DNA of 64,000 bases from Eutreptiella sp. 'Long Island Sound 2002'. Taxonomy: Eukaryota; Protista; Euglenida. The notes beneath the pieces are model-generated. The model ran no database searches. It saw only the letters and a list, made by a program, of their open reading frames with translations, and was not told where the DNA came from. Each line of letters begins with the position of its first letter. Within the stretch, counting starts at the first letter, position 1. Location of the stretch: NCBI GenBank assembly GCA_964036045.1, contig OZ038378.1:174468001-174532000 (forward strand), written 5' to 3'. This document shows, piece after piece, positions 25,746 to 62,812 of this stretch. A program made the translations under genes and the position numbers.

Positions 25746-26391
25746 GGTACAAATCTGACATCCGAAGGTGTTAGCCTCTACCCAGGATAGGCGGTTTCAC
25801 TGTTGCAGAAAAATGACCACAAAACCCCAACAAATCCTTAGATTTCCGAAAACACCATTTTTCAACGAACACTGTTTTGGGGATTCCTCTTGTGACACCC
25901 CAACCTCCCCCAGGGTTTCACTGTCAATAGTGAAACCCTGGCGCAAGGACCCCTTTGTACTACACTCTGGGCTGTACGCAACCCCTTACACATGTCTACA
26001 TACCCGCCTTGGGATGGTGGTGGTGTTTTATTTTGCGTGGGATGGATTATATGAGCACCTAAGTGTGCTTAATAGTGCAGGGTAGTTTCAGTGTCAGCAG
26101 TGAAACTCTGCCTTGCTCCTAAGCATATGAAATAGTGTCAAGCACTGGAGCACATAGGTGCAATAACTCGATGACCGGAAGTAGTTTCACTGCTAACAGT
26201 GAAACTAGTTTTGATAATATGGTGTGTGTGTGTGTGCACTGAGAAAATGGTACCCGGCGTCAAACACTTTCACGGTTTGACGGTGAAACTATTTCCCATA
26301 TTGTGGTGTCTAGGGGTAAACAGGGAAAACGGGTAAAGTGGATTTAATTTTTGGAAGAGGCCTGTAAAGAACGGAACCGGAAATATAGCTG

Positions 26392-26465
26392 GACTGTTGT
26401 ATGGTCCAATGTTTATCACCCTTGTCTCGTACCACTAGGGGCTGGGTTCGATTCCCGGTAGATCT
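26392..26465 (+). ncRNA. Pseudo-tRNA or tRNA-derived SINE head (Glu-like 3' half) inside element E; inverted copy at ~36165-36240
   Basis: B box GGTTCGATTCCCGG preceded by GGGGCTG; A-box-like TAGTCCCATGGTTAA is clearer in the right-arm copy; the anticodon arm is degenerate. Confidence 0.55.
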
Positions 26466-27059
26466 CCCCTCCTAGGCACCATGTGGCATACCACACCAGT
26501 ACATGGTCACCAAGGAGGCATGGTAAGTGCCCCGTTGCAAGGGGGGTACACTACTAGTACTACCAAACCGGTAGTTTTCAGACATGTTTTGTAGTATATA
26601 GTTGACCATGTAGTGAGACAGCAGATTTCTAGCCCGAGTGGTAGGAAAAGTACTTCACCGGGACTTGGAGGCATCAATATGGTTGTGCCAGACCCGTCAT
26701 GTCTTTGTGGCTTCCCTGTGGTTGTGGTGCATGCAGGGACAATCGGGTGCCAAGTGAGGATCAGATTGACGATATGCCACCCCAATGTACTTGCATTCAC
26801 TCTGTTGTCCACCTCCCTCTCAGGTGGGAGGCATGCACAACACTGGATCACAAGGACTTCTTTCACTATCAATAGTGAAACCAGTTGCAGCCACTTCCTG
26901 TTAGCACCACATGTTGTCTTTCACCCTCTGCACAAGTTCCGCTAGTCTGTTATTGTGCCGGCTAACACCTTCTCACAACTAACTTTGACTGTCAACTGTG
27001 AAACCAATGGTTGTTGTCTGCTTGTTCTGATTGTATGTGATTTGCCTTTGACGCCTCAG

Positions 27060-32326: not shown

Positions 32327-35300
32327 CTCCGCTCCCGTTTGTCATTTTCTTGTCTTTCACCATCAACGCCACCGACACGCAACTCATCGGCTGGCACTTC
32401 ACCAGATTCCGTTGTGTGGCCGACTGCCCAGTCCGGATGCTCGGGCTCCACATGCTGATCACGGGGGTCCTCCGTTTTACTGGATCCTGCAAAGAGCAAG
32501 GAGGAGCCACAAGTAGGAGAAAAACAGCCCAAAACACCATGAAATTGCCTGTCCGAGGACCTTTTGGAACGGTGGTTCATTGTCAACAGTGAAAGTGTGT
32601 TATAGGCAATTTCGTTCAAAGCAGCATGTGTCTTTGGTTATCAACAGGGCACTAGTTTTCGTTTGTCACTATCACGCCAGATACTGGGTTCACCTTGTTC
32701 TTGCTATTTTCAAATTTATGAATTTGCCATGGAACACAAGAGTGAGAGCAACCAGCAGGTCCTGAAACTGACATTGTGCACCCTCGTGCTGCTACATCGT
32801 GACACCTACTTCTCATTTACCTGCACTTGTGCCTTCTACCAAGGGATGCACAATAAAGGTGCATATTAATCTTGCACTGGTGCAATGCTACCATGAATGA
32901 TATCATGCTGGTACCTTTATAATGCGATGTACATGGACAAATTCCCACAACAGGCAGGGGGGGGGGGGGGGGGGCTCAAGCGTCATGTACCACACGCGCA
33001 GAACGTTGCACTGGATGCAAGTGAGCGTATGCACTGTCCCCTATTTTGGACCCTTGTTTTCCAAGGCTTTCATTGTCAACAGTGAAAGTGCTTTGTGAAT
33101 ATATGCTATTCGTGTCATTATAATCTACTCACCATTGCATAATCCCCCTGTGATACATTCCAGCCTGCTTCACCTTGTGTTTCACAGTTGACAGTGAAAG
33201 TCATTGCCTGTCCCCCGTCCTGATGGCAATTACACACAGGCATCAGCAAACCCGGGGTACAATATGGAACCGCAACCATTGGCCGTATGACAAGTCCACT
33301 AGCCACTATACATCTGTGTTCCGGAGCATTGCCAGCCCTACCCAACTAAGACACGGTCATCGTCGTCGCTTTCAGAATCAACATAGCACAACTAATTGTC
33401 ACCCAATGCCACGGCATCATGGTTGACATCATCTCCGGAGTTTGAGTGAGACCCGTTTTGGTCACCAACGCCACCTGCTCTTTTGCGTTTTCTGGGTACC
33501 TTTTCCCAAATGGGCATTCCCAACACCGTAGCATCTCGTGGTAGCACGCCGCATAGGCGTGCATCTGTTCCGCATAGTCATCAAAGAAGGAAGTTTAGTC
33601 AAGACCACAGGGCGGTTGCTGGTGCTGGATCATGTGGTCAGCTACAGCCAGTCAAACGCCTTGCCAGAGAGCTGCAAAAGAGTGTGTAGGCTTTGGTGCA
33701 GTAGGAAATACTGCGACTGAAGCAGGCTTGTTGAGTCCTAAGGGCAGGTGGAAATTTGAAGCTGTCTGGCCAAATGTTGGTACCTGTTACACAAGCGGCC
33801 TTAGGATTATCCTCCATCTCATCCGGTCTCATATCTATAGAAGGGGCCGTGCATGAAGTCAACCAGTGCAACAGATTTTGCAACCCACCTTCCACCATTT
33901 GGATACATCCCAATGTTATATGGGGCTTTTGCTGGAATGTGGTTCCTTGTCGAGCCTTTCTGATGGCTAAAAACTGGGACTCATATTGCTCTAATGTGGT
34001 AGCACTGAGATCATGCGTCGATGCTTTCACAAGATGACAGAGCATCGATTCCCCTTTCTCTTCAACACGTGCATTACCTGGCAATGCATCATGGAAGGAA
34101 CTCCACAGAAGGAGAGCAATGCGGAACGTGTTTTTATAGTTGCCGTCACTACGTGTCGGGCCGATCTTCCGCAGCACAAACAGGCTGCATTCTAAAGCCT
34201 TGCGTGCTGCAACACGGGTGCCACAGGCCCAATGTCTCCAGGAGCAGTCACGCACGATTATCCCTAGCTGCAAGACAACAAGAATATAAGCCTGCAATAA
34301 TTCTCGTAGGGCCTCCTAGCGCTCCTGCCACAGGGAAGTTTCATTGTCAACGGTGAAACTCCGGAAGCCACGGTCGAATTGAGACTTTGGTGCGGGATAC
34401 GCAAGGTAGCACGAGAGAATGAGCCTCTCCAAGACAAGGAGAGGGGGGTACTGGTACACCCGTGTGGTAGTTGGATCCATTAAGAAGCAGCCATACTCTA
34501 GGCAGATAAAAAAAAGGTGAAAAAGCCTTGTATAAAGCAAACACACACGCCTTGTATGCGTGCCAAATCCCATAGACAGGGCATATGTCACGGAGCGCAC
34601 CGCGTACTAGGGAAGCAGCATGCTCCCTATTGTACACAACCTTTGCAACCCTCCACCATTTGTTCATGTCACAAAGTAATACCTTCACTGGGTTCCGGTT
34701 ACCAAGATTGTCTTGCAATAACCGGACCAACACGTCCCCCAATCCCGCCGTCTTGGTGACATTGATGTCCCATAACCCGTACGGCTGCCATGATGAAGTC
34801 CTGGGGTTGCCCCGGCGAGTATCCAACGGACAGCGAAGAAGACCAGGGGGCAGTCGATCCGATCCCAAGTCCCGCACAACAGTCAAAAACTCAGTGACCG
34901 AGTCCCGCATATGCAGTGCCACGTCCTTGACCCATGCTGTCAATTTCTCTACGGAAGGCCACCCAGCGTACGACAATCTCACCGACAGGCTTGTGAGGAT
35001 AGCGACAGCAGTGCACGACAAGGAGATGTCCCGTGGTCAATCGATATTTTTGCTCTACCGGCTCTTGCAAAATTGGTGTGCCCATGTCACATAACATCCT
35101 TGTGTCATTTCTTCGCGGATCCGCTCTTGTGCAAGGGCAACCCGGTTGGCCAATGGTGGTTCCCGATGGAGTACAAGTCCACTTCCCTGCAACTCAAGCC
35201 GTTGTTCCTTGGTCGGTGCTGTCATTACCCTTGTACTGGGGACCGTTTGTGCCGCTGCGATCGGCTTTGCCAGCACCAACATGCGGCGGAACAGCTTGAA

Positions 35301-36879
35301 CTCAGCAGGCACGAGGCGCAGTAGCCCTTGCTTGGGCCCACGACTTGACCAGTCCTGCTTCCGTTCCGCAATACTTCGTCTTGTTTGAGGATTGGGGAGC
35401 AACTCCAGGGCTATCTCGACAAAAGTCAAAGCTGGTCCTCCGCCCAAAAGCGCACTCCACCAGTGAGTCCCCGTCTTGGTACATATCAGCCCGGTCCAGG
35501 ACGTCATACAACCCCGAGCACAAGTCTCGTAGACTGAATGGGGGGGCACCGCTGTCAGTCATAATGCCCTCTGAGGCGTCAAAGGCAAATCACATACAGA
35601 CAGAACAAGCATACAACAACCATTGGTTTCCCAATTGGCAATGAAAGTTAGTTGTGAGAAGGTGTTAGGTGGCACAATAACAGACTAGCGGAACTTGTGC
35701 AGAGGGTGAAAGACAACATGTGGTGCTAACAGGAAGTGGCTGCAAGTGGTTTCACTGTTGATAGTGAAAGAAGTCCTTGTGATCCAGTGCTGTGCATGCC
35801 TCCCACCTGAGAGGGAGGTGGACAACAGAGTGAATGCAAGTACATTGGGGTGGCACATCGTCAATAAGATCTTCACTTGGCACCCCACTGTCCCCGCATG
35901 CACCACAACCACAGGGAAGCCACAAAGACATGATCGGTGTGGTACAACTATATTGATGCCTCCAAGTCCTGGTGAAGTACTTTTCCTACCACTAGGGCTA
36001 GAAATCTGCTGTCTCACTACATGGTCAACTATATACTACAAAACATGTCTGAAAACTACCGGTTTGGTAGTACTAGTAGTGTACCCCCCCTGCAACGGGG
36101 CACTTACCATGCCTCCTTGGTGACCGTGTACTGGTGTGGTATGCCACATGGTGCCTAGGAGGGGGGATCTACCGGGAATCGAACCCAGCCCCCAGTGGTA
36201 CGAGACAAGGGTGTTAACCATGGGACTAGACGACAATCCAGCTATCTTTCCGGTTCCGTTCTTTACAGGCCTCTTCCAAAAATTAAATCCACTTTACCCG
36301 TTTTCCCTGTTTACCCCTAGACACCACAATATGGGAAATAGTTTCACCGTCAAACCGTGAAAGTGTTTGACGCCGGGTACCGGTCCTCAGTAGGCCCACA
36401 CGCCACAGTATCACAACTAGTTTCACTGTCAACAGTGAAACTACTTCCGGTCATCGAGTTGTTGCACCTATGTGCTCCAGTGCTTGACACTATTTCATAT
36501 GCTCAGGAGCAAGGCAGAGTTTCACTGCTGACACTGAAACTACCCTGCACTATTAAGCACACTTAGGTGCTCATATAATCCATCCCACGCAAAATAAGCC
36601 ACCAGCACCATCCCAAGGCGGGTATGTAGACAGGTGTAACGGGTTGCGTACAGCCCAGAGTGTAGTACAAAGGGGTCCTTGCGCCAGGGTTTCACTATTG
36701 ACAGTGAAACCCTGGGGGAGGTTGGGGTGTCACAAGAGGAATCCCCAAAACAGTGTTCGTTGAAAAATGGTGTTTTCGGAAATCTAAGGATTTGTTGGGG
36801 TTTTGTGGTCATTTTTCTGCAACAGTGAAACCGCCTATCCCGGGTGGAGGCCAACACCTTCGGATGTCAGATTTGCACC
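32327..36879 (-). repeat. Inverted duplication of 25746-30528 (giant palindrome arms around a 1.8 kb spacer)
   Basis: Continuous reverse-complement match with near-identical ORFs on opposite strands (e.g. 27068-27328+ vs 35302-35562-); the right arm lacks ~210 bp corresponding to ~29222-29432. Confidence 0.96.
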
Positions 36880-46400: not shown

Positions 46401-46430
46401 TGAGACCACATGCCTTGTGAAAGGAGGCGC

Positions 46431-48077
46431 ACGGGGGTGGGAGGTTTGGCGCTAATGAGGCGCATGGGGGGGCAGGGTTTGGCGCTACCGAGGCGCGCGC
46501 GGGCAGGGGGGGGGGGGGGGCGCAAAGGGGTTTGGCGCTAACGACACGCACGGGAGGGGTTTGGTGCTAACGAGGCACGCAGGGAGCACACAAACGGCCG
46601 TCCATACACAAGGCGCTGCACACACAAGGCGGTATGTAGCCACCGCAGGAGTCTTGTTATGTAAGGGGGTGCGGGGGCTGGCCCCCGCGGGTCGAGCATA
46701 GCGAGCTGTAGCGTGGGAAGGGTTGGGGGTGCACACAAAAGGCGGTCCATACACAAGGCGGTGCAAGGCATGTAGAGGGGGGGGAGTCAGAGATGCACTA
46801 GGGGGGGATCGGGGGGGGGTTGGGGGCAGAATATTTTTTCCAAGGTTTGGCACTGCTGAGGCGCATGAGGGGGGGTTTGGTGCTGGCGAGGCGCACGGGG
46901 GGGGGGTTGGCGCTATCGAGGCGCACGGGGGGGGGGGGGGCTAACAAGGCGCAAGGGGTGGGGATGTTTGGCGCCGTCGAGGCGCACAGGGGGTAGAGAT
47001 TTGACGCTAACGACGTGCACGCCGAGCTCAATTACACGAGTCACACAGTTTCAGCTAAACACGCACATTGCTTGACTTGTTCAAGCATGGCTTTCAACTC
47101 AACAGGGCTTTTTTCAACGTTGTTTGATTAATTCTTTCGGACCGTGTCGTGAGGTTGTTGGGGGACACAAAGGGGACAAGCAGCCAGAACAAGTTTGTGC
47201 TACAGCAAAAGTTGTGCATATATTTTGGTGAACTTGCCATTTTACTGATTGCTATGCTGTTTCGCTTTACAAATGTTGCCACTGAGTATGATTGTGTATG
47301 TTTGTTTGTTTTGTGGCCTTTCTACATGAACAAATTCTTGCTGTTGCATGTGTTTAGGTGCAAATGGTGAGGTGACACCCCAGATTACGGCCTACCCCCA
47401 CTGCTGCCCAGGGGCGCGTGACCTCACCGTGGTGTGGGGGTGAAACCGGGGGGGGGGGGTCCCCCCCGGGCTAACACGCAATCTGGGGGGTGGCCTGGTC
47501 CACCACTGGTCCAGCCACGGCGGCCGGGTCACGGGATCCTGCGCCCCACCCCTCGCCGGCCACCGTGGGCCAGCCACGATGGCACAGGGCGGGCTCCACC
47601 GGGGGCTGGCGGTATGCAAGTCAGCCCCGGGTCTCCCTGTGACCTAGCCCTCTCCAGGGCACATGTGTATCCCTCTTTTGTGCCCCAGCCCATGACACCG
47701 TGTGTCTTTGCACAGGTTCATCACGGGTGGGGACCGCGGACTGGAACGCCCAACCGGGCCTGGGGTCAAGCCTCAGTGCCTCGGACGGCAACTACGAGGA
47801 ATATGCGCACCGAGACCGGGGGAGGGTCCCGCGCCTACCGCTACGGTGCTCACTGCGCCGGGGCTAGGGTACCTTCCTCTCGTTTCGGCTGCGCCTTGAA
47901 ATAAGGGGAGACCCCCCGGACATGGGTACCTTGGAGATTGGTTGGAGGGGGACGGCGCCCCCTTGGCGCCCGGAAATGATCATGGAAGAAGGGGCGGCCC
48001 CCCGATCTGTCTCGTGGAGGGGCGCCATCCCCTCCCAGTGACTTGCACGAAGGGGAGGCCCCCCGTGTGGCGAGTAT
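46431..48077. repeat. 1.65-kb direct repeat, copy 1 (includes a ~30-bp GGTTTGGCGCTAATGAGGCGCACGGGG tandem array)
   Basis: Near-identical to 54023-55689 over its full length; paired ORF translations are almost identical (e.g. 47149-47370 vs 54765-54986). Confidence 0.96.
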
Positions 48078-48450
48078 TCCTTTGTCTACCATCCGTACGT
48101 TTCTGGCCGGAGGCGCGCTTTTGTGGCCCATGGTGTTGCACGTAAGGTTTTGAAAGCGCGTAGAGCGCGCACAACGCGTACAACACGTACAGACCAAGTA
48201 ACACGCACAGGACGCGTAGCACGCCGAACACGTACCTCCAGAGGCACGTGCAAAATTGAAATACCGGAACGCGCAGAACGCGCAGCACGTCGCTTTGCAC
48301 ACGGGCGCACATCGAGGAGGGGCCGGGTCCTCACAGTTGGGAAATGAATCCTACGCGGTTGTCCCCCAGGGTCCGCACTGGTCCCATGGGTAGGGATAGC
48401 ACAGGCTCCGCCTCCATGATCGTCTCGTTCAAGCCCCCCATTCCACCACA

Positions 48451-50059
48451 CTACTCCTCATCTTCCTCATCCTCCTCATCCTCCTCATCCTCCTCGTCCT
48501 CCTCATCCTCCTCATCATCCTCGTCCTCCTCATCCTCCTCATCCTCCTCGCCCTCCTCGTCCTCCTCGTCCTCCTCGTCCTCCCCGTCCTCTTCGTCCTC
48601 CTCATGGACCTCCTCCCACACCTCCTCGTCCTCATCGTCTACCTCCATGTCCCGTGCGCCTTGCACACCTCCATAGCCATGTCCCGGTGCAAAGCACAAC
48701 ACATGGAATGCCTTTCCACAACCGGTACATTCATAACCGGTTCTTCCCCTCTTGCAAAAGTGGCACACACGCCGCCGTTGTGTCGCCACCGGCACGTGTA
48801 CCTCTTGTCGGAGGGGGTGGGCAAACTACCGCCGCCGCAACACTTGCCATTGCCACTCCCACATACTAATAGTCTCCTTGCAAAGTCCCAATTGCCGGCA
48901 AGTTGCGAACGCATTCACAACCGCGTACCGGAGCACGAACGCACGCACTGCGTGGGCCCATGTCATCTGGCGGCCAACCGACCTCATCTGCAGGGCCATC
49001 TGGTTCACACCATCGACACCGCGCGACAGTGTGCGGTACGCCGCCACCACGGGGTGCACTTCGCGCCCGCTTCGCCGACGAGGTGGTCCCTTTCGGGCAA
49101 ACCACACATTCGTCAACATCGGCACAACGCGGGGGGGGTTTATGCCCGACCTTCGGATTCTTGTACACGCACAAACTGTACTTGAAATCCGCAATGGTGC
49201 ACACCGCCGTCTGCCCCTCCTGCACCTGCTCCCCGGCCCATGTCACGCCGTACGTGGACCTCTTCGTCATCATGAGGAATGCCCGCTTGTTGGCGGCCAA
49301 TTCCTTTGCGAGGCCGTGGGGCCCGAAAAAGGAGTCGGCACATAGCACCGTCCCCTCGGGTAGCAATGATGCCCACAACTTCATGATGTTTTTGTCATCA
49401 AAGTTTCCCGCCGCAGTGCCGTAGCGGCATAGCCTGCCCCGTACACCGGTGTACAAATACATGTCCACCACGTACCCCCATGTTGCGTCCGCCAGGCAAT
49501 ACAACTTTATCCCGGTTGGGTGCGGTTTCCGGGCAATGAACATTTTCAAGGGGCCCGCTAGCATCCCCTTGTGGGGCACCACCGACTCATCGCCGCAGGC
49601 CCCACCCCCCATGCACCACGCTCCCGCCCATTGGCCATTGCAGTCTTCCAGTAGCGAGACCACATCGGTACGTAGCAACCGTTGCAGCAAGTAATATTGG
49701 CGACGCGTCAGCATGTTTGCCATATAGGGATTGTATAATAGGCCCTTGCGGTCCCAAACCCCGTCAACCTGCATGGGTCGCACCATCCCCAATAGAATTA
49801 GAAATGCATTTTACCTAGGTACTAGAGGTAGCAGGTCTGGCCTTCCATGGTCCCGTAGGGCTTGGCATTGTAGATTCTCTATGGGGGCCATGATATGGTC
49901 CCACACCTCGTCCTCAGTATAGCCGATGAGCCAGGACTCCCCTGGCCGGATACCGTACTGGATATCGGCCGCACAGTCCTCCTGTGGGAGCCTATGGTCG
50001 TAGAGCGGTGGCTGAAATTTTGGTGGCATCACAAAAAAAGATTGTTGAAAAATGAGACT
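48451..50059 (-). pseudogene. piggyBac-family DDD transposase with cysteine-rich C-terminal domain and acidic tail; 2 in-frame stops and 1 frameshift
   Basis: NAFLILLGM; CGDESVVPHKG; RKPHPTGIKLYCLAD; LCADSFFG; YRTLSRGVDGVNQM; YAVVNAF; CHFC...YECTGCGKAFHVLCF..GH; stops at ~49811 and 48826, frameshift in the G-run at ~49135; ATG at 50029. Confidence 0.93.
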
Positions 50060-50636
50060 CTGTAGAACACGCAACACACCAGTGGGAGTTCCAAAGGCAA
50101 CAGCATAGGCAGCATGGGCGGAACGCGCAGAACGCGCAGCACACGCAGAACGCGTAACACGACCTCTAGAGGCAGAAGCAGAAGCGGACACGTAGAGCGC
50201 GTATCACACGAAACACACGCAGGACACGGGCTGCGGGGACATGGGCTGGGCAAAGGTTATGGGGATGGGGCAATGGGGGCGGCAGCACGAACAATTTGAT
50301 TGTTGCTTTCTTGAAACGGTGTCCATGCACCCTGCATGGTCCACGCAAAGCAGCGGTCGCAGCCGCCACCATTCATCCGAGCGTCGAAAAAGCATTCACA
50401 ACGCAATAAATACCGGCGTCGGTGCCCCAACGGAAGCGCCGCCTACCGATGCCACCACTGTGGGGTTGGCTGTCAGTGTGCTTGCTGGGCCAACGGCAAT
50501 GGCCTTGAAAAGAAGAGGGGTTGTGAGGTTTGTCTGCCGCGGACCTCATCGGTGTCGGGCCACTCATCCCCATCCGAAAACTGTGTGTTTGAAAATATGC
50601 TGCCTGGGCTGCTCCAACTTAGGTCGGACCGATTTA

Positions 50637-53436
50637 CTAAATCTGCACTATCTCGTCCTTCTCCATCTCCTCTCCCGCCGCTGCGGCTTCCTCCGGGGGC
50701 TGCTCTCCCATCTCCGCATCGCTCTTCGCCGCCCCAGCGCTCTCTTTCTCGGCTGCCTCCGGCTCTTGCGGTGGATCCACTGGCGGGGTTGACTCCTCCT
50801 CCGGCTCCGTTTTGATTGGGTGCTGCAGAACACGAAAAACGCGTGACACATGCAACCCACCTCCAGAGGCAAGCCGAGAGGCACCAAAACAAACACGTGT
50901 GGAACGCGCAGAACGCGGAGAACAAGGGGCCCACATCCAGAGGCACACCCAGAGGCTACGCGCAAATCCCCTGGAACGCATAGTACTAATGTGCAACGCG
51001 CACTTGTGCACCTTCCGTGTGCGGGGGTCCCGTCTCCGGCCCCATCTCCGGCCTGCCTTGTTGCTCCCCGGACGGTGGCGGTGGTGGTGCTTGAGGTCCC
51101 CGCGGTAGTGGCGGTGGTGGGAGTAGTGGCGCTGGTGGCATCCCCGGCGGTGGCGGTGGTGGCAGTGTTGGTTGCGGTGGAGGAGGATACGTTGGTGGCG
51201 GCGGGTACGCGGGGGGCTGGTACCTGTACGGGTCGGACCCGTACGGGAGACTCCCGGAGCTCGAAGGCATTTCCGGATCCGTCTTCATCGGCTGTTACTC
51301 GTACCGCGGCTCATACTCGTACCGCGGCTCATACTGATACCCATGATGCTGCGGCCACTCCTCCAAGCTTGTCTGCAGAACATGTAGAGCGCGCAAAACA
51401 GCTAAAACACGGGAAGGCAAATCCAGAGGCAGTCACAGAATCGAACGTGCAGACCGCGTAGAACGCGTAGGACGCGCAAAGCAGACGGGAGGCAACTCCA
51501 GAGGCAAGTGAAAAGACCCGTGCCACGACGCCCAGCACAGGAATGCACACCCGCTGCCTCTTTGCATCCTTTGTCCTCACGAGTGTCCATGCCCCTGTGT
51601 CGGGCAGGTCGACACCTCTGTCCTCCGTTAGGATGTAGGCCATGAGGCCAGCCATGCGGACCGTTCGCGACAGTTTCTCCTATAAAGACCACGCAAAGCG
51701 CGTGCAACACAGGAAGGCACCCCCAGAGGCAACGAAGAGGCGCAACATCAGGAACATGTAGCACGCGCAGAACGCGGAAAACGCGCTACACGCTGGACCG
51801 GAGGCGTTAGAGAGGGAACACGCAACACATGCAGTACACCTGCAAAGCGTCAGTGGGCATGTCGACAATGTCCTCCACACCAAACGCACTCAGTTGGTCC
51901 GTGCTGCGCCGTGGTCGGTATCCTGACGAAAGGGGCTCCCCCTTCAATTTCGCCAACGGCAGGCCTGCAGCTGCGGGGTCACCAAAGTCCGTAGGCCAGT
52001 CCGGGGCTGTGACACAGTTCGTGCACACCGACACCCCCTTGATCATCCCGATTGCGACCTGGCGGGGTGAGCTGCTGCGGTATCGCTCCTCAAACAGTTC
52101 TCTGGCAGCGGCCGTGCTTTGTGCATTCTTCGTGCCACAGCGGAGGACCATCTGCACACTGTACGCCCGCACGTCCGTCACCAGAAGCAGCGCCAGGCCC
52201 AATTCGCGGCGCGCTTGTGTTTCCTCGGCCAAACACACTTTGTAGTGTTGGCATACTCGTCCGAGTGACACTTCGTAGTCCGACTCCAGGGTGCGCCGCA
52301 TGGCCTGCACATCGTTGTCCTGGGCGGCCCCGGCTTGGTACTTCTCCCCTCGGGTTGCAACTGTGGGCATCGTCCTGTGTGGTTCGCCTTCCACTGCGTA
52401 ACGCACATGCTTGGGCTTCTCCTCCACTTTCTGCTTGCCCCTGCTCTTCTTCTTGGGTGGACTCTTCGTCTTTTCCTTCTTCTTCTTGGACAGCTCCTCC
52501 GGCTCTGGTTTTGCCTCTGGCTTCGGCTTGACAGGGGTCCCCTTTGGTTGTGCTTGTGCGGCCATGCTGGCAACCTCCAGGTGGGTGCTGCGGGGGGCGC
52601 GTTGGGCGAGGGAGGGCTCGTTCTGGTCCTTCACACTGGCAGCATCACTGCCCTCCTCCTCCTCCTCGTCCTCCTCCTCTGCCTCCTCTGCCTCCTCTTC
52701 GGACTCCTCTTCCGACTCCTCCTCATCCGAACTCTCCGTGGTTGCGTCACCTTGGATCCACGTCCATAGCCGGTCGCGCGGAATCTGTAGAACATGCAGA
52801 ACATGCAAGACACATGGAGGCAACCCCAGAGGCAACACCGGAGGCAACTGTACGAAACGCGCAAAACGCCCGGAACGCGCAAAACGCATAGCACACAACC
52901 AGAGGCAGCTCCAGAGGCAACGAAAAAGGGAACGAATAAAACGCGCAGAACGCACAGAACACCTTTTTGTATTTCAAGAAGCCATCCTTCTTGTTGCGGA
53001 CGTCTTGCACCACATGTGGCGCATGTGGCTTGCCCTTCGGGGCCCTCACCTGTAAAAGGGTGCAAGAGGCGGTAGGGGACAAAAGGCAGCGCGAAATAGT
53101 GCTCACATGAACCGCAAACCCGTGAACGGGGTACACCTGATACGTTGTGAGGTTCGTCAACCAAAATTCTTTGTCCTGCCCGTCCTTGGCCCCTTTCTTC
53201 TTCCGATTGACACATCCGGCATGCCACCCCGCTGCGACACAAGGGGTTGAGGAGGACAACGGTGCAAGGCGGGAAGCGAGACGAAAACGGAGACACACAC
53301 ACATACTGGTGGCTTATTTAATTTGAAAGACAACGAAGGCGTCGTGCTTCAGCTTCTCCGGATGCTTCCACTCTCCCAGCTTCCCACCCTTCTGCAACCA
53401 TTGAGAATGTGTGGCGGGGTACAGGGGTGCAGGCAT
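50637..53436 (-). pseudogene. Seven-exon cargo gene (~645 codons; basic N-terminal domain, acidic tract, helical domain, Pro-rich tail) with 2 in-frame stops
   Basis: Exons 53436-53307, 53231-53137, 53049-52963, 52784-51840, 51679-51551, 51372-51004 and 50822-50637; six GT..AG introns (75, 87, 178, 160, 178, 181 nt) all preserve frame; TAA at 53314-16 and at ~51294. Confidence 0.85.
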
Positions 53437-54022
53437 GCCTCCTGCACCATAAAAGCAGAGCGGCCTAGGAATGTTGAGGCAAAAACATGCTGCAGAGCAC
53501 GTAGCACGCGTACAACGGCTCCAGAGGCAACGTCAGAAGCGAAAAATGACAACACGCAAAACACCCAACACACGTGGGCAATGTAGCACCAAGGCAAAGG
53601 CATAGGCAGGAGGCAATAGTCATTCGACTACGCACGCTTGAGTTCCATTGGGAACCAGTGCAGGTGTGTGGCAGAGTACACGGGTGCAAGCATGGCAAAA
53701 AAAAAAATCGGGTGTGGTATGATAGGTGTGAAGCAATTAGCCCCTGCAGAACGCGTAGAACGCGTAGGAAGACTTCCAGAGGCAGACTCAGAGGCACCGG
53801 ACCGAAACGCGCAGGACGCGCAACACACACAGCATGCGTAGCATCAAGACAGAGGCAGAGGCAGGAGGCAATTGTGATTCTCTCTTCAAAAATAGTTGAA
53901 TGGATGTAAACGGATAGTTCCATTGCGTCGGGCACCCTCGAAAACCCCCCGGAAGCACAAAACAATGATAAAAGCAAAATCGCGAGAAAATTTCGTGCTA
54001 TGCGTTCTACGCGTGGTAGCCA

Positions 54023-55689
54023 AGGGGGTGGGAGGTTTGGCGCTAATGAGGCACATGGGGGGGCAGGGTTTGGCGCTACTGAGGCGCGCGCGGGCAGGGG
54101 GGGGGGGGGCGCAAAGGGGTTTGGCGCTAACGACACGCGCGGGAGGGGTTTGGTGCTAACGAGGCACGCAGGGAGCACACAAATGGCAGTCCATACACAA
54201 GGCGCTGCACACACAAGGCGGTATGTAGCCACCGCAGGAGTCTTGTTATGTAAGGGGGTGCAGGGGCTGGCCCCCGCGGGTCGAGCATAGCGAGCTGTAG
54301 CGTGGGAAGGGTTGGGGGTGCACACAAAAGGCGGTCCATACACAAGGCGGTGCAAGGCATGTAGAGGGGGGGGGGGTCAAAGATGCACTAGGGGGGGATC
54401 GGGGGGGGGTTGGGGGCAGAATATTTTTTCCAAGGTTTGGCACTGCCGAGGCGCATGAGGGGGGGTTTGGTGCTGGCGAGGCGCACAAAAGGGGGTTTGG
54501 CGCACGGGGGGGGGGGGGATTGGCGCTATCGAGGCGCACGGGGAGGGGGGGGGGGGCTAACAAGGCGCAAGGGCTTGGCATGTTTGGCGCTGTCGAGGCG
54601 CACGGGGGGTAGAGGTTTGACGCTAACGACGTGCACGCCGAGCTCGATTACACGAGTCACACAGTTTCAGCTAAACACTCACATTGCTTGACTTGTTCAA
54701 GCATGGCTTTCAAGTCAACAGGGCTTTTTTCAACGTTGTTTGATTAATTCTTTCGGACCGTGTCGTGAGGCTATTGGGGGACACGAAGGGGACAAGCAGC
54801 CAGAACAAGTTTGTGCTACAGCAAAAGTTGTGCATATATTTTGGTGAACTTGCCATTTTACTGATTGCTATGCTTTTTCGTTTTACAAATGTTGCCACTG
54901 AGTATGATTGTGTATGTTTGTTTGTTTTGTGGCCTTTCTACATGAACAATTTCCTGCTGTTGCATGTGTTTAGGTGCAAATGGTGAGGTGACACCCCAGA
55001 TTACGGCCTACCCCCACTGCTGCCCAGGGGCGCGTGACCTCACCGTGGTGTGGGGGTGAAACCGGGGGGGGGGTCCCCCCCGGGCTAACACGCAATCTGG
55101 GGGGTGGCCTGGTCCACCATTGGTCCAGCCACGGCGGCCGGGTCACGGGATCCTGCGCCCCACCCCTCGCCTGCCACCGTGGGCCAGCCACGATGGCACA
55201 GGGCGGGCTCCACCGGGGGGTGGCGGTATGCAAGCCAGCCCCGGGTCTCCCTGTGACCTAGCCCTCTCCAGGGCACATGTGTATCCCTCTTTTGTGCCTC
55301 AACCCATGACACCGTGTGTCTTTGCACAGGTTCATCACGGGTGGGGACCGCGGACTGGAACGCCCAACCGGGCCTGGGGTCAAGCCTCAGTGCCTCAGAC
55401 GGCAACGACGAGGAATATGCGCACCGAGACCGGGGTAGGGTCCCGCGCCTACCGCTACGGTGCTCACTGCGCCGGGGCTAGGGTACCTTCCTCTCGTTTC
55501 GGCTGCGCCTTGAAATAAGGGGAGACCCCCCGGACATGGGTACCTTGGAGATTGGTTGGAGGGGGACTGCGCTCCCTTGGCGCCCGGAAATGATCATGGA
55601 AGAAGGGGCGGCCCCCCGATCTGTCTTGTGGAGGGGCACCATCCCCTCCCAGTGACTTGCACGAAGGGGAGGCCCCCCGTGTGGCGAGT
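54023..55689. repeat. 1.65-kb direct repeat, copy 2
   Basis: Direct match to 46431-48077; both diverge after CCCCCCGTGTGGCGAGTAT. Confidence 0.96.
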
Positions 55690-56603
55690 ATGCGAGCGAA
55701 GGGGTGCGCCGACATTGCGCAACCACACCGGAAGACGTTTGAAAGAAGGGGAGGCCCCCCGATGTCACCCCATGCCGGGAATCCCACCCGGGGAGGAAAG
55801 ATGAACAAAGGGGAGGCCCCCCGTTTATACGCTACTTGTCGATGGAACCAGGGGGGGCGCCATCCCCCCCAGGAGCTAGCGCAAAACGAAGTTTTGTTGG
55901 ATTGTGGATTTCTTTCTTCTATGGAACCGAGTGGGGGCGTCATCCCCCCCAGGGGCATATATGCCGTTGATGTGTATGTATCAAGTAATGTAAGTACGTC
56001 ACCGAAAGAACCACAGCATTGTATAATGTACTCCTCCGGCCAACAACAAGGGAGGGCCGGAGGTCCTGTAAAAGCCCCGGGCCCCCCAACGGCAGCCCCA
56101 AAGGTGAGCGCACCACTGGATGGGGCATGTCTGCGGGCTAAATATTGCTCTGAGTAAATACCTAACGTAATAAATAGTGCCTACTGCCATAAATAATGCT
56201 TAACGGGTAAACCCCCCCCCCCCCGGGGCCAATTTAGTGCGCTCCCCCCAGAGCCGGACTGGACCGGCCGTGCTGAGGCGAGCCCACAAATGGGTATGAC
56301 AGGCCAGATCTAATTGCTGGCAGCCACGCCTCAGTACACTCCTCGGGCTTATAAGGCCCGAGGGGGCCCCAAATACCGTACCGTTCGGGACTTAAGCCCC
56401 GGCGGGTTTGGGGTTGTTTTGGTTAAGAGGACTCACGTTGAGTCCCACTTACTGTTACCCCGGAGTTATGACCTCCGGTACTGCCTGCCTACTTGCCTGC
56501 TGCTGCTAACAGTTAGGGTAAAAATAGCACCGGCCCCCCACGGCGGCGGTGACACCCGATCCCCCCAGGCCCTATATACTATATACTACTATATATATAC
56601 TCG

Positions 56604-58600
56604 GGCCGCGGGGGGATAGGGCCGCCCCGAGGGGGTCAGAGGACACACGGCACTGTCCACCCCCACACAGCGGCGGTTACACCCGAGTTCCTCCGGTCCT
56701 GCCTAGGCCGCGGGGGGATAGGGACGCCCCGTGGGGTATTGGGGACACACGGCACTGTCCACCCCCACACAGCGGCAGTTACACCCGAGTCCCTCCGGCC
56801 CTGCCTGGGCCGCGGACGGGTAGGGACGCCCCGTGGGGGATTGAGGGCACACGGAACTATCCACCCCCACACACCGGCGGTTACACCCGAGTCCCTCCGG
56901 TCCTGCCTGGGCCGCGGAGGGATAGGGACGCCCCGTGGGGGATTGAGGGCACACGGAACTGTCCGTCCCCACACAGCGGCGGTTACACCCGAGTCCCTCC
57001 GGTCCTGACTGGGCCGCGGAGGGATAGGGACGCCCCGTGGGGGATTGGGGACACACGGCACTACCCAACCCCACACAGCGGCGGTTACACCTGTACCCTT
57101 CATGAACCGGCGGTTTGAATCTGAGATTCACGGTACCGTGAATTTCACCTATTTTTGCTGTGTCTTGCTTGTAACTTGGTGCCATCGTGTGCTTTTGTCG
57201 TGCTATCTTCGCCCAAAGTGAGATCCAACAAATGTGTGCAAATTAGAGGTTTGAAGTAGCCACATGGTTCAACACATTTGGTGAGATTCGCGTGAATGTG
57301 AAATTCACGGACCCAAATTCACGCATAAATTCACGGGTTTTGGCACCTCTCGTTTTGGGCGCGGTTTGGGCATGGTGGATGCTTTTGGGGCGGGACCTTC
57401 ATTGGATGGTGCGTAATGAAGCCGGGGGAGGAATTTTACCCCCTCCATTCCCTCAGAACGATCCAATAATATGGTTTTTTCCCCCGAAAACCTCAAAATT
57501 TGGCTAAATTCACGTGAAATTCACGCATTTATTCAAACGGCCACTTACCCCCCGTTCACGAAGGGTACAACCTGAGTCCCTCCGGTCCTGCCTGGGCCGC
57601 AGGGGGATAGGAACGCCCCCTGGGGCATTGAGGGCACACAGAACTGTCCACCCGCACACAGCGGCAGTTACACCCGAGTCCCTCCGGTCCTGCCTGGGCC
57701 GCGGGGGGATAGGGACGCCCCGTGGGGGATTAAGGGCACACGGAACTGTCCACCCGCACACAGCGGCGGTTACACCCGAGTCCCTCCCGTCCTGCCTGGG
57801 CCGCGGAGGGATAGGGACGCCCCGTGGGGGATTGAGGGCACACGGAACTGTCCATCCCCACACAGCGGCGGTTACACCCGAGTCCCTCCGGTCCTGTCTG
57901 GGCCGCGGAGGGATAGGGACGCCCCGTGGGGGATTGAGGACACACGGCACTGTCCACCCCCACACAGCGGCGGTTACACCCGAGTTCCTCCGGTCCTGCC
58001 TGGGCCGCGGGGGGATAGGGACGCCCCGTGGGGTATTGGGGACACACGGCACTGTCCACCCCCACACAGCGGCGGTTACACCCGAGTCCCTCCGGTCCTG
58101 CCTGGGCCGCGGAGGGATAGGGACGCCCCGTGGGGTATTGGGAAACACGGCACTGTCCACCCCCACACAGCGGCGGTTACACCCAAGTCCCTCCGGTCCT
58201 GCCAGGGCCACGGGGGGATAGGGACGCCCCTTGGGGGTTTGAGGGCACACAGAACTGTCCACCCCCACACAGCGGCGGTCACACCAGTGTCCCTCCGGTC
58301 CTGACTAGGCCGCGGAGGGATAAGGGCGCCCCGTGGGGGTTTGAGGGCACACGGCACCGTCCACCCCCACATAACGAAGGTTACACCCGGGTCCCTCAGG
58401 TCCTACCTGGGCCGCGGAGGGATAGGAGCTCCCCGGGGGGGGCATGGGGGTTATACTGCAACACCCAGCCCCATACAACGGCGATTACGCACGGATCCCA
58501 CCGGTATTGTCTGGGTCACGGGGGGATGGGGACGCCTGTGGGGGGTATGGTGCCACCCCACCCCGCACAGAGGCGTTGACACTCGGGTCTTCCCGGCTCT
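56604..58600 (+). repeat. 102-bp tandem monomers (~13 good copies plus degenerate ones) upstream of LINE ORF1
   Basis: GGCCGCGG.GGGATAGGGACGCCCCGTGGGG...CACACAGCGGCGGTTACACCCGAGTCCCTCCGGTCCTGCCTG starts at 56604, 56706, 56808 and onward; interrupted at 57092-57569. Confidence 0.95.
57092..57569. mobile_element. 478-bp MITE with 16-bp TIRs and a 3-bp TSD (ACC)
   Basis: TGTACCCTTCATGAAC ... GTTCACGAAGGGTACA; ACC on both sides (57089-91, 57570-72); removing it restores the 102-bp monomer. Confidence 0.92.
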
Positions 58601-58659: not shown

Positions 58660-60273
58660 ATGGTTTCGGAACTCACCCTGCTCAGGGGCGAGGCGGGCTG
58701 CCCTAGCGGCTCCCACCTCTCCCCCGGCAGGGGGTCAGGGGAAGGCCGCCATCGGTGGATCCACTCTAGGCCCGCGTTCTGTCCTGCCGCCCTCCATCGC
58801 GGAGGGAGGGGTGCGGGGTGCTATGGTACCCCCGTCTTTGCAGGACACAGAGAACGCACAATGAGTGGCCCCATCGACCTAGCTTTCCCCGGAGAACCCG
58901 ACTACCGGGACTCCCCACTGCTGGATGCCATCCGGCAGGGGCCCTCTGAGGCGCACAGTCGCCTGAGGGATAGCTGGTCAGTGGCCAGCGACAAGGCGCT
59001 GCTACAGGCCGCCACGGACTCCCTGCCGGGGGTCGCCCGTGGGCGCCCGGAGGAGGTGCCGGACGCCCTACGCTGGGCCCGGCGCATGGGGGTGATCACC
59101 GCTATTACTTCCATGGGGGTTATCCTGACCCCGCGGGGGTTGTGCCTCATGGCCACGGTCACTGGGTCTTATGACGCCCAAACTTTCGTCTCCCAGGACG
59201 TCCCCCTTATGGTGGCCGCCGGGGGGCCCTTGGTCGAGTACCTGGGGAGTACCATGCACCCGCGCCATTTGGATCTGGCCCGTCGGGTCATCTCGGGGTG
59301 CGCCCCTTTCGACACTCTGCGCCCGCGGAAACGTTTGGCGCGGATTCTAAAAGTGGACGACACCCTGGCCGAATCGGCCAGTGCACCGCAGGTGCACCAT
59401 AGCACGGCCAACGCGGCGTTACGTCCGATTGCTCCCTTTCTCTCCCCTGGGTGCCAAGCTGATTGGGGGCGTTTGGGGGCCAAGGACCAGGTCCGAATTC
59501 TTTTGGCCCTGCCCAAACGGCCCACCGAGGTCCTACCTCACATATCCGGCACGGGGAATGAATTGTGGGCTGGGCTTATGGTGTGGGCCTCCCGTCAGGT
59601 GGGAGGCGCCAGCGCAGGGGTACCGGTGACCCCGCTACCAAAGGGGTTACCTGAAATCCGGGATTGGCCGCTAGACGTCACCCGGGGCGCATTTGAGGCT
59701 TCCACTTTACCGATTACCACGGTGGAGGCACTTGGGGAGCTGCTAGGCGATATCACGCCATCGTGGGCCTCAGCCCCCGTTCTGGCACTACTTGCCACCC
59801 GGGGCAACGAAGCCCCACTCAACGCTGCGTCTTGGACGCGGGTGTCCTCCCGCCCCGGAGGAAGTGCTGCCGCGGCGGAGCCTCCCGTCCCGGCGGGCGC
59901 TGACGCCCCGTCGGTGGTGGACGCGGACGCAGCCGGGGACGACGACCCCACGCAACCTTACGTGAACGTAGACGGCGTGGACCCAACGGTCTCCGACCCT
60001 TGGCGACTTCTTGAGCCCTCCGCGGGGATTGCAGCCGATGCGGGGAGTAACGCGGTTCCCCAGGGGGGACATACCCCAGAGGGAAAATCCCCCTCAAACC
60101 CGGTGGGGGCAGCCGCGCAATCAAATTTGGGGTTACCTCCATCTATCAGTTTGACGCGGAATCACCAATTGGGGAACATGGGGAAGACTCTCCCACCCCA
60201 TTGGCGATTCCGGGCCCCGCAGGTTCAGGTCCCGGGGGCTTGCCACGCCGGCGGACCGTCACACCACCAGTAG
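58660..60273 (+). CDS. LINE ORF1, N-terminal part (likely ATG at 58860)
   Basis: 537-codon open frame directly after the monomer array; natural composition from MSGPIDLAF; no recognised domain. Confidence 0.65.
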   Translation: MVSELTLLRGEAGCPSGSHLSPGRGSGEGRHRWIHSRPAFCPAALHRGGRGAGCYGTPVFAGHRERTMSGPIDLAFPGEPDYRDSPLLDAIRQGPSEAHSRLRDSWSVASDKALLQAATDSLPGVARGRPEEVPDALRWARRMGVITAITSMGVILTPRGLCLMATVTGSYDAQTFVSQDVPLMVAAGGPLVEYLGSTMHPRHLDLARRVISGCAPFDTLRPRKRLARILKVDDTLAESASAPQVHHSTANAALRPIAPFLSPGCQADWGRLGAKDQVRILLALPKRPTEVLPHISGTGNELWAGLMVWASRQVGGASAGVPVTPLPKGLPEIRDWPLDVTRGAFEASTLPITTVEALGELLGDITPSWASAPVLALLATRGNEAPLNAASWTRVSSRPGGSAAAAEPPVPAGADAPSVVDADAAGDDDPTQPYVNVDGVDPTVSDPWRLLEPSAGIAADAGSNAVPQGGHTPEGKSPSNPVGAAAQSNLGLPPSISLTRNHQLGNMGKTLPPHWRFRAPQVQVPGACHAGGPSHHQ

Positions 60274-60430
60274 GGTTGAAGGTCTGAATACGCCGGCCTC
60301 CAAGGGCTATACGCTGGAATCCGCACAACACGCGGCCCTGCCGGGGCTTCCCCCGCACACCACGGGTACTCCACAACTCCCCGCACGGGGTTCTCGCGCG
60401 GGCCCGGCTACCGCCAACCCACAGAGGCCC

Positions 60431-62812
60431 GTGTTCGAGGGGGCCGGGGTGGGTATATCTCGGGGCGACGGGGCCGGCCTCCCCTTCCCACCCAGCACCA
60501 CGGCGGGCGTGCCCCACCGGGACGCCACCTACGCCGGGAACCCGGGTGAACGAGGGCACCCGGGGCTCGCAGGTGCAGGGGGTCGGCCCCCATTGGACGG
60601 GGGACACTACTACCCCCCTCTTTGGGAGTCCCGCCGCCTCCAGGACCTGGAACGCGACCTGGAGGACGCCCAGGCCACGTGCCAGGCCTTATCCTCCGAG
60701 CAGGACCGCCGCCTTCAGGAGCTGCAGCGGGTCCGGGCGGACCTGCACCGCTCCCAGGGGGACTTGTCCTCCATACGGCGTGACCACGCCACGGTCAGCG
60801 GGGAACTGGTGCGGCAGCGGGCCCGCACGAGGTCCCTCGAGGAGGAGGGCAGCAGCCTCCGCCGACAGCTCGCCGACGCCCAACGGGCGGCACGCGATGT
60901 CGCGGGGGCAGTTGATGAGCGCCTCAACCGGCACCTCCCCGCCATCCTCGAGGCTGTGCACACGGTTCGAGATGAACACGTCTCACAGCCCGCAGTGGAG
61001 CGGGCCCTGCGGGGATGGGTACCCGCGGGATACGGGCCGCCCTCCACGGCCAACCCGAACTTCCGGGAGATCTGCGCGACTCTGGTCTGCGCATCGGTCC
61101 TCCGTGTGGACCCCCCTCCATCCATGGAGCAGCTCTCGCGTCGGTTGCGGGTCCGAGTCCAGCCCGTTGTGCGTTTCCCGACAGAGGCCGTGGGACAGGG
61201 GCCCCAGCTGGGGTTGCCCACGGACGCCCGCCCGACGGGCACGGCCCCAACGCCGCACGAAGGGCTAGAGGCCTCCCCGGCGGTCCGCACGGCCGGCCAG
61301 CCCCACGCCGCGGCCACCCCCGGGAACCGCTCCGGGGGGGACACCACCCCTACCGCCACGGATACGGCCGGGGTTGCATCCTCCACACCGGGGCGGGACG
61401 AGCTCCGCGCCCTTTTGGTATACCTCAACGAGGTTCCGCCGGACTCGCAGACGGGGGAGGCGCAGAAGCTCCATCTGCACCTGGCTACCAGGCTGGACCT
61501 CCCCCCGGAGTTCCCTCAAAGCAATCTGCAGAACCAATACACGGCCCTGGGCAGGCTCCTACCCACGCGGCCCGAGCTGGGCCAGCGGGTTGGGGAATTT
61601 GTCCAGGACCGCCGGGCAGCGTCCTCCGGTTCGCAGAACCCGGCCCCCGACTCCCAGGGGGCGGCCAAGGTGGCGGCCGCCTCCCGGGCCACCCAGGCTG
61701 GAGGGAGCGGCAAGTCACCCGGTAAGGGCAAGGGCGGCCCGGACTACGACACGTACTCCGAGGCCGTCATGGTCCGGTGGCACGTCAACCCGCGCGACTC
61801 CCCGGAGGCCATCTATCCCCTGTCCCCAGGTCAATTGGGCATGGTCTTGAAGAAGGCCTTCGGGGACTTCCGTGTGTCCTATATCAAGGACGAGGGGCAA
61901 CTATGCCACACGGAGGACGGGGGTTGGGCACTCGTGGGCGTGCGGCCCGAGGCGGCCTCTGCCCTGGAAGGGGGCGGCGGCGACGCTGATAAGCAGTTCA
62001 CCTATGAGTGGGCCAAGGCCAACAAGAAGCCATACTCCGGGGGGCTGTTTCGGGCCCACCATTTGGAGAAGAGCAACGGCGTACTCCAGCGTATCAGGAG
62101 TGGGGACCTTATGGCCTGGCCCAACGGCGTGACCCGGATGCGGGACCGGGACGGGGCCGGAGAAGAGGGTCGGAAGCGACGCCGCTCCACCTCCTGGTCC
62201 CGCCCACGGGCCTCCCATCGGTCTGAGGGGGACTACACCCCGCGCCGGGGAAGCAGATATCCCTCGCCGGAAGAGGAATTGCACCGTGGTGGCCCACGGC
62301 ATGCTCCCCAGCCTATGTGGGGCCCGTGGGACGGTCGTTACGATTATCGTCCACCGGCACGGGGCGAACAACCACGCCAGCCGCCGCAGTGGCTCCCCCG
62401 AGACGACGGATGGGGACAGGACCATCGGCCCTACGACCCCCACGGGGGCTATGGGGAGCGGTCCTCCTACCCGCGGTCGGAGATGCACCCGGTGAACCCG
62501 GCACTTCGGGCGCCGGGTGCCAGCCCCCCACCAACTGCCTACTCGGGGGCGTCGCCTCTGGAATCCCGCTACCCGGGGGACGGCCGGGCGCCCCCCCACG
62601 GGGCGGCCATGCCCCCGCAGGGGACGAGCATCCCACAGGCTCCGTACCAACACCAGCCGTACGTGCCGCTAGCCCCGACCGCGGATGCGGCAGCAACCCC
62701 CTCGGGGTACGCGGGGCCCTGGTACGGGGAACCAGTCCTAGCGGCCCCTGCCACAGCCCCGCCCGCCCCGGGGGGCCCGGTGGCGCCCCCCGTGTGGGGG
62801 CCCAGTCCATGA
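60431..62812 (+). CDS. LINE ORF1, C-terminal part: coiled coil, RRM-like segment, Arg/Pro-rich tail
   Basis: 793 codons; heptad stretch RRLQDLERDLEDAQ...LRRQLADAQ; alpha/beta segment AVMVRW...LGMVLKKAFGDFRVSYI...WALVGV; lies directly upstream of the APE-containing ORF. Confidence 0.75.
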   Translation: MFEGAGVGISRGDGAGLPFPPSTTAGVPHRDATYAGNPGERGHPGLAGAGGRPPLDGGHYYPPLWESRRLQDLERDLEDAQATCQALSSEQDRRLQELQRVRADLHRSQGDLSSIRRDHATVSGELVRQRARTRSLEEEGSSLRRQLADAQRAARDVAGAVDERLNRHLPAILEAVHTVRDEHVSQPAVERALRGWVPAGYGPPSTANPNFREICATLVCASVLRVDPPPSMEQLSRRLRVRVQPVVRFPTEAVGQGPQLGLPTDARPTGTAPTPHEGLEASPAVRTAGQPHAAATPGNRSGGDTTPTATDTAGVASSTPGRDELRALLVYLNEVPPDSQTGEAQKLHLHLATRLDLPPEFPQSNLQNQYTALGRLLPTRPELGQRVGEFVQDRRAASSGSQNPAPDSQGAAKVAAASRATQAGGSGKSPGKGKGGPDYDTYSEAVMVRWHVNPRDSPEAIYPLSPGQLGMVLKKAFGDFRVSYIKDEGQLCHTEDGGWALVGVRPEAASALEGGGGDADKQFTYEWAKANKKPYSGGLFRAHHLEKSNGVLQRIRSGDLMAWPNGVTRMRDRDGAGEEGRKRRRSTSWSRPRASHRSEGDYTPRRGSRYPSPEEELHRGGPRHAPQPMWGPWDGRYDYRPPARGEQPRQPPQWLPRDDGWGQDHRPYDPHGGYGERSSYPRSEMHPVNPALRAPGASPPPTAYSGASPLESRYPGDGRAPPHGAAMPPQGTSIPQAPYQHQPYVPLAPTADAAATPSGYAGPWYGEPVLAAPATAPPAPGGPVAPPVWGPSP

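Follow-up and report, generated by a model that had tools for sequence, protein, structure and literature searches.

When several introns of one gene look alike, are they copies of a mobile intron that spreads through the genome, or do they belong to the gene and to the element that carries it? This question is raised by a locus of the euglenid Eutreptiella sp. 'Long Island Sound 2002', in a 64-kb stretch of DNA (genome G000, chromosome 1:174468001-174532000) to which we refer throughout as the window. An earlier reading made from the letters alone (the sequence-only reading) had described there a multi-exon gene inside a transposon, with introns that are mostly copies of one sequence family, and had left two possibilities: an introner, or intronic signals homogenised within a mobile element. 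We analyzed the window and searched 2.28 Gb of the genome for related sequences. The transposon, hereafter element E, is a piggyBac-like DNA transposon with two genes, present as a decayed copy at positions 48076 to 54023; E and all of its features described below are given as read on the minus strand. We consider it fairly probable that the look-alike units are the subterminal repeats of this dead element itself, which are spliceable and have been kept in its introns, and that no genome-wide introner is at work.

Eight related units (U1 to U8) exist in E, in agreement with the number that had been estimated. The module that they share is a unit of 160-180 nt in which tandem GCGTTCTGC 9-mers alternate with TGCCTCTGG words, on the sense strand throughout. 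A MAFFT alignment yields a fixed order (donor 9-mer, TGCCTCTGG words, 9-mer array, more TGCCTCTGG, acceptor 9-mer) with a mean column identity of 55%. At its start the module has a donor-like 9-mer variant, GTGTTCTGY, and at its end an acceptor-like one, GTTCTGCAG. When up to three mismatches are allowed, GAACGCGCAGAACGCG has 21 matches against 0.42 expected, on one strand and all within 48163-53820. At one mismatch or fewer, GCGTTCTGC has 17 sense matches, 16 of them inside units, and TGCCTCTGG has 20, with 19 inside units; about one match per strand would be expected for either word. The module has no match in the rest of the 64-kb window; the sequence-only reading had not seen the family in host gene introns. 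That reading had also called for an alignment of all units against all, judged by shuffled controls. Pairwise local alignments scored against dinucleotide shuffles gave a mean z of 9.0 (minimum 1.6; maximum 26.4, for the pair U1/U2), well above controls near 0 (units against exon or spacer sequence, z -0.1; units against reverse complements, z 0.4). The module is a real, strand-specific sequence family.

The units occupy particular places in E. Two of them, U1 (53744-53900, ending in CGCGTTCTGCAG) and U2 (53490-53640, with its acceptor 53 nt upstream of the ATG), form part of the leader of the first gene, which we call the cargo gene. The next four, U3 to U6, lie within that gene. U7 (50060-50227) has its acceptor 30 nt upstream of the ATG of the second gene, which encodes the transposase; an equivalent unit precedes the transposase ATG by 20 nt in E2, a sister family of E (copies L031 and L032; cargo P0072; transposase P0115). 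Finally, U8 (48118-48302) displays the full module architecture in the 3' subterminal region. The claim that further members of the family stand ahead of both genes and behind the transposase is thus confirmed, since U1, U2, U7 and U8 all carry the module. Judging from its position, U2 may be either an intron of the 5' untranslated region (UTR) or an outron for the addition of a spliced leader, and U7 likewise may be either a 5' UTR intron or such an outron; we infer that the two acceptors are candidate sites for cis-splicing or spliced-leader splicing. As a separate observation, 24 nt of the spliced-leader sequence of Euglena gracilis have 3,309 exact matches in the genome and none in a reversed control, which places this genome in or very near Euglena. 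The matches are scattered along the chromosomes on both strands, at more sites than expected from clustered spliced-leader RNA arrays alone.

Six GT-AG introns had been proposed to restore one continuous frame in the cargo gene, and this structure is borne out. Exon 1 (53307-53436; 130 nt, conserved in E2) starts with the ATG at 53436 and is followed by intron a (53232-53306; 75 nt, GT-AG, phase 1), exon 1b (53137-53231; 95 nt), intron b (53050-53136; 87 nt, GT-AG) and exon 2 (52963-53049; 87 nt, with a homologous exon in E2). Introns a and b are not of the module type. The remaining four are: U3 (52785-52962; 178 nt), U4 (51680-51839; 160 nt), U5 (51373-51550; 178 nt) and U6 (50823-51003; 181 nt), all in phase 0. 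They separate exon 3 (51840-52784; 945 nt), whose product has an acidic and a basic tract as well as a conserved helical orphan domain, exon 4 (51551-51679; 129 nt), whose protein is 60% identical to that of E2, the Pro-rich exon 5 (51004-51372; 369 nt) and exon 6 (50637-50822; 186 nt including the stop codon), whose end resembles the last E2 exon. The intron coordinates given in the sequence-only reading are correct: on the minus strand the units start with GTG(T/C) and stop with (C/T)AG. Exons of 225 nt (130+95), 87, 945, 129 and 369 nt join in phase 0, and the joined frame is open save for two TAA codons, one in exon 1 and one in exon 5, both of which read CAA in other copies. Retention of U3 shifts the frame, and retention of U4 meets an in-frame stop after 10 codons; exon 4, which follows U4, is conserved all the same.

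Could these units be internal repeats of a decaying element, with GT and AG ends that are coincidental and 'exons' that are unrelated open frames? The window copy is dead indeed: its cargo gene is interrupted by two nonsense codons and its transposase gene by one, together with frameshifts, and the 5' terminal inverted repeat (TIR) is truncated. Furthermore, no spliced product is found in protein databases. Against this stand four junctions that are all in phase 0 with open frames, an arrangement unlikely to arise by chance. Between E and E2, whose homologous exons are interrupted by introns at the same positions, the proportion of nonsynonymous differences (pN) is 0.27-0.31 in the exon-3 domain and exon 4, while the proportion of synonymous differences (pS) is about 0.8 and saturated (exon 4: pN 0.27, pS 0.81); the exons are therefore under purifying selection. 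Many near-identical E2 copies keep intact frames. Moreover, the protein sequence across the U4 junction (...DALQ/EKLSRTV..., the slash marking the junction) is colinear, with no indel, with ...DELKQRYKRTV... of a more distant family, E3 (cargo P0237 and P0240; adjoining transposase P0141), and is also colinear with the protein of another such family, E4 (cargo P0269 and P0253; adjoining transposase P0136). Neither E3 nor E4 has an intron there, and of all the evidence at hand this colinearity best supports the precise position of the splice sites. Altogether, these comparisons suggest that U3-U6 are introns of the cargo gene, whose removal restores a conserved protein, and make coincidental repeats a most improbable account.

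As to what this protein is, the sequence-only reading could name no family, and our searches, which were run exon by exon, did not change this. They detected no Pfam family, no relative in PDB (profile search, best E 0.72) and no match in the ESM Atlas. The AlphaFold model is helical, with a predicted local distance difference test (pLDDT) value of 39, and hence unreliable. An exhaustive profile search returned 76 matches; those inspected look like pieces or divergent versions of the cargo protein, and all five of the cargo matches that were looked up come from genomic contigs in ENA. By these comparisons, the cargo protein is an orphan with no known family.

The link between the module and the transposon is found at the ends of E. 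The boundaries of the window copy (48075/48077 to 54023) are common to 12 other genomic copies, which are 93-96% identical and have unrelated flanks. Intact copies have ATATTCCTTTGKCTACCA at both termini. In the window copy the first 8 bp of the 5' TIR are missing, the full element measuring roughly 5.96 kb, and a remnant is left at 54014-54023. Immediately internal to this remnant lies CGCGTAGAACGC (54002-54013), an inverted copy of the 9-mer motif and the sole antisense match to GCGTTCTGC in E. The terminal block that includes this inverted 9-mer differs at only 2 of the first 29 bases between E and E2, despite their saturated divergence. At the other end, the 3' TIR (...TGGTAGACAAAGGAAT) lies at 48076-48093. 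Short TIRs together with subterminal repeats are features of piggyBac elements; E has such TIRs in its intact copies and 9-mer arrays in subterminal position. The flanks of E have no TTAA; nearly all intact ends are bordered by AT or ATAT, and this palindromic ATAT could be a 4-bp target site duplication (TSD) or part of the TIR. Among deletion derivatives, the breakpoints show no clustering in module units.

Some peculiarities of individual copies may be recorded here. The window copy is flanked, in the manner of long terminal repeats, by direct repeats of 1.65 kb that are 95.8% identical (46430-48077 and 54021-55691) and are missing from other E copies; the truncation of its 5' TIR falls exactly at the junction with the flanking repeat. 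Two E copies on different chromosomes (L013 and L052) have near-identical 3' flanks (atggttRgaacccggaattt), from either insertion into the same repeat family or copying together with the flank. One further copy carries a 186-nt insertion in the acidic tract of exon 3 (L017:3797-3983; G000 C3, about 42.455 Mb). This was considered as a new module intron and rejected, its sequence being unrelated to the module; it could be a nonconventional intron or a MITE, a transposable element of miniature size with inverted repeats.

The second gene of E (48451-50029) encodes a piggyBac-type transposase that has an Asp/Glu tail and a putative Cys-rich C-terminal domain. The window protein matches the Pfam family DDE_Tnp_1_7 (PF13843) with an E value of 1.1e-13, and intact relatives P0141 and P0115 match it at 2e-17 and 3e-20, respectively. 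The Cys/His-rich segment (...CxxC...CxxC...H..C...) has weak matches to PHD and ZZ domains (E 0.003 to 0.3). Besides frameshifts, the coding sequence of this copy contains one internal stop. A short intron was entertained at this place and rejected: the stop is a TAA nonsense codon replacing a conserved Tyr within a continuous exon, and the coding sequence therefore has no intron. In a diverged transposase, P0155, two conserved transposase segments are separated by some 40 extra residues that include ARSAR (a GCGCGTTCTGCGCG-like word); this suggests a module intron within that transposase gene.

How the same words could serve both ends and introns can be pictured as follows. The 9-mer would plausibly be the docking word of a DNA-binding protein encoded by the element, most likely the Cys-rich C-terminal domain of the transposase, as we infer by analogy with piggyBac. 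The subterminal repeat array would happen to be spliceable, so that copies of it could reside as introns in the element's genes, and module copies would supply 3' acceptors for cis-splicing or spliced-leader splicing ahead of both genes. New copies might occasionally seed introns in this gene lineage and not in host genes.

The analogy is with the piggyBac element of T. ni, whose transposase uses a Cys-rich domain to bind TGCGT words, both in subterminal 19-bp repeats and in a further site some 180-200 bp into the element (PMC5861402). Like it, E has a short GCGT-containing word that is repeated near both ends, with one copy adjoining the TIR, and its transposase has a putative Cys-rich C-terminal domain. 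Unlike in piggyBac, the word arrays of E span the whole element, lie precisely in the spliced-out segments and leaders and keep one orientation. Comparable transposase-binding repeats are the AAACGG repeats of Ac/Ds and the 12-bp subterminal repeats of En/Spm. No description of piggyBac elements in Euglena was found in the searchable literature.

Several points weigh against this overall explanation. All 37 motif copies in introns and leaders share the sense orientation, and among the 9-mers the one at the acceptor is conserved best; a splicing role at the RNA level would account for these two facts equally well. The word nearest the TIR at the 3' tip (CAGAAACGT) is merely motif-like and is not a mirror image of the arrangement at the 5' end. 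Searches with protein words for a spliced cargo product (exon 3; residues 330-523 of P0003) returned only open reading frames (ORFs) from unspliced genomic ENA entries. To these must be added two points that concern evidence presented below: the pattern that was used to survey the genome is strict and was followed up at 30 loci, so that degenerate solo units in host genes could be missed, and the intron gains in E3 and E4 are known from translated protein read-through and not from DNA.

In its pure form, the RNA-level alternative holds that the module is a splicing cassette, providing splice-site, branch or enhancer signals for GC-rich introns and leader acceptors, with no docking of protein on DNA; the likeness to the element ends would reflect shared ancestry with the 3' subterminal region. 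Apart from the sense orientation of every motif copy in the units, it draws support from the exact coincidence of unit limits with splice sites, from the acceptor 9-mer (...CGCGTTCTGCAG) as the best-conserved part of the units in E as well as in E2, and from the position of acceptors 20-53 nt ahead of both ATGs. However, it leaves unexplained the inverted 9-mer beside the 5' TIR, within a terminal block conserved between E and E2, as well as the presence of U8 past the transposase stop and near the tip of the element, where no intron is needed. Nor do the units give any RNA structure signal (folding z from -2.4 to +0.8) or match any Rfam family; on the same grounds, the idea that the module introns host small RNAs was rejected. 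We regard an exclusively RNA-level role as unlikely, though far from negligible. In any case, the DNA-docking and RNA-level roles of the module words are not mutually exclusive.

Is the module confined to this transposon? The joint pattern GCGTTCTGCGCGTT-N(5-80)-TGCCTCTGG was matched 423 times in the genome and not once in the control. U8 represents the commonest class among these matches. The first 30 loci along chromosome 1 were all (30 of 30) in E, in E2 or in a relative approximately 75% identical to E2. Likewise, the 100 match strings that were listed fall into few classes, most of them recognizable as E or E2 units, and genomic matches to U3 turn out to be copies of the whole element. 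By this test, an exact pattern and 30 sampled loci, the module is private to this transposon superfamily.

These data bear directly on the notion of a true introner, according to which a unit of some 170 nt would move into unrelated genes and create introns there, the transposon being merely one host or source. Introners, transposable elements that generate introns, occur in Micromonas, Aureococcus, dinoflagellates, fungi and others, and TSDs or TIRs are present at unit ends in only some of the known families (PMC9860276). Their core criterion, similarity near both splice boundaries in at least four introns at non-homologous positions (PMC9860276), describes U3-U6, which have 9-mers in common near donor and acceptor and align over their whole length, on the basis of short repeats that a low-complexity filter might remove. 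E further resembles introner systems in its link with a DNA transposon and in the evidence for intron gain or loss among related genes, intron positions varying between families. Unlike introners, the module was seen only in the genes and leaders of one transposon superfamily, with none found in host genes: copies in many non-paralogous genes were not encountered at the 30 loci sampled, a strict and non-exhaustive survey, and none elsewhere in the window. Neither TSD nor TIR could be recognized at the ends of U3-U6 (AAG/GTG...CAG/ATT, CAG/GTG...TAG/GAG, CGG/GTG...CAG/ACA and CAA/GTG...CAG/CAC), where no direct repeat extends beyond AG or G. Also unlike introners, the units are old, only about 55% identical to one another, and united by short motifs as opposed to recent copying; the introns shared with E2 date back across saturated divergence. 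A true introner is thus very unlikely in our view. As regards the two possibilities left by the sequence-only reading, homogenised intronic signals within a mobile element are the better fit to old introns with a conserved grammar, while an introner spreading to unrelated genes does not agree with the 30 sampled loci, which all fall in the lineage, or with unit ends free of TSD and TIR.

A further point of reference is provided by the nonconventional introns of Euglena, for which a MITE-like origin has been proposed, and which have non-GT-AG borders, CAG at +3, CTG at -8 and base-pairing ends (PMC12501133). Introns that derive from transposons are the theme of both systems. Unlike these introns, all E units are GT-AG, lack the CAG/CTG pairing signature and show no hairpin or excess folding.

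The age and upkeep of the module can be gauged from the sister families. In E2 these words recur at corresponding places: in the leader, in the introns, in the unit ahead of the transposase ATG and in the 3' subterminal region. Units of E and E2 are as similar to each other (mean z 8.0) as units within E, and matching intron positions score no higher than non-matching ones: U4 against the E2 intron i3 gives a z of 5.5, U6 against the E2 pre-transposase unit a z of 20.0. With neutral sites saturated between the two families, the motif grammar that they share is not a mere remnant of common descent; to judge from these alignments, it is maintained by selection or concerted evolution. The introns themselves must be old, since their positions are common to E and E2 despite the saturation of synonymous sites. 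At the U4 position the E2 intron (L031 reverse complement 3901-4026; P0072, P0224) is 126 nt long, in frame and stop-free. ORF callers read through it, and its retention would add 42 residues with no truncation.

Farther away, the module is visible as translated read-through. In E3, E4 and P0155 this read-through contains GCGT-type words with a 9-nt period and GCCTCTGG-type words (for example RVMRVIRV, ARSAR and GLWR); the RVM/RVI repeats suggest that E3 has its own, CGCGTTATG-like, variant of the 9-mer. Cargo proteins P0237 and P0269 match this genome at 100% identity; an E3 copy (P0237 with P0141) lies at G000 C4:113.12 Mb and an E4 copy (P0269 with P0136) at C14:54.306 Mb. The positions of the insertions differ between families. 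U4 is present in E and E2 and missing from E3 and E4. In E3 an insert directly precedes KHYQVCL, and in E4 (P0253) one of 51 residues precedes PDLGLAAA. In the C-terminal region, E2 has two module introns against one in E, and the P0155 transposase family has its insert of about 40 residues where other families are contiguous. Three mutually exclusive presence patterns on a three-branch tree would make at least two intron gains more parsimonious than losses alone. Differences in intron position between related families support a limited, introner-like behavior within the lineage.

Taken further, this behavior suggests a stronger version of events, in which the subterminal array is a portable spliceable unit that has repeatedly created introns in the element's own genes in diverged families, as well as spliced-leader acceptors for a two-gene transcript, and which would correspond to a precursor stage of introners. 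We put it forward tentatively, as a doubtful but serious possibility. Introners are thought to arise when DNA transposons gain splice signals. If the portable-unit version is true, selection for spliceable transposon ends would have acted first inside the genes of the transposon itself, ahead of any spread into host genes.

The remainder of the window contains some other repeats. Positions 56600-58545 are taken up by a tandem array (period about 102 bp; copies 82-93% identical), and a large inverted duplication (25746-29222 against 33409-36879; 95.6% identity) lies inside a different transposon. Long open frames at 58660-62812 have no Pfam match.

In conclusion, our analysis points to a transposon lineage in which the word that marks the ends also builds the introns and leaders of the element's own genes, and in which this usage is kept across deep divergence while sister families differ in where their introns lie. 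Should the words be docking sites, they would provide a route by which a transposon can accommodate numerous internal binding sites and still keep its genes intact. Should they be splice signals, they would amount to a private splicing code inside a mobile element. A knock-in splicing assay exists in Euglena, an organism with unusual intron biology (PMC12501133). With either role, E and its relatives would represent a concrete stage, open to testing, that lies between ordinary transposon ends and introners.

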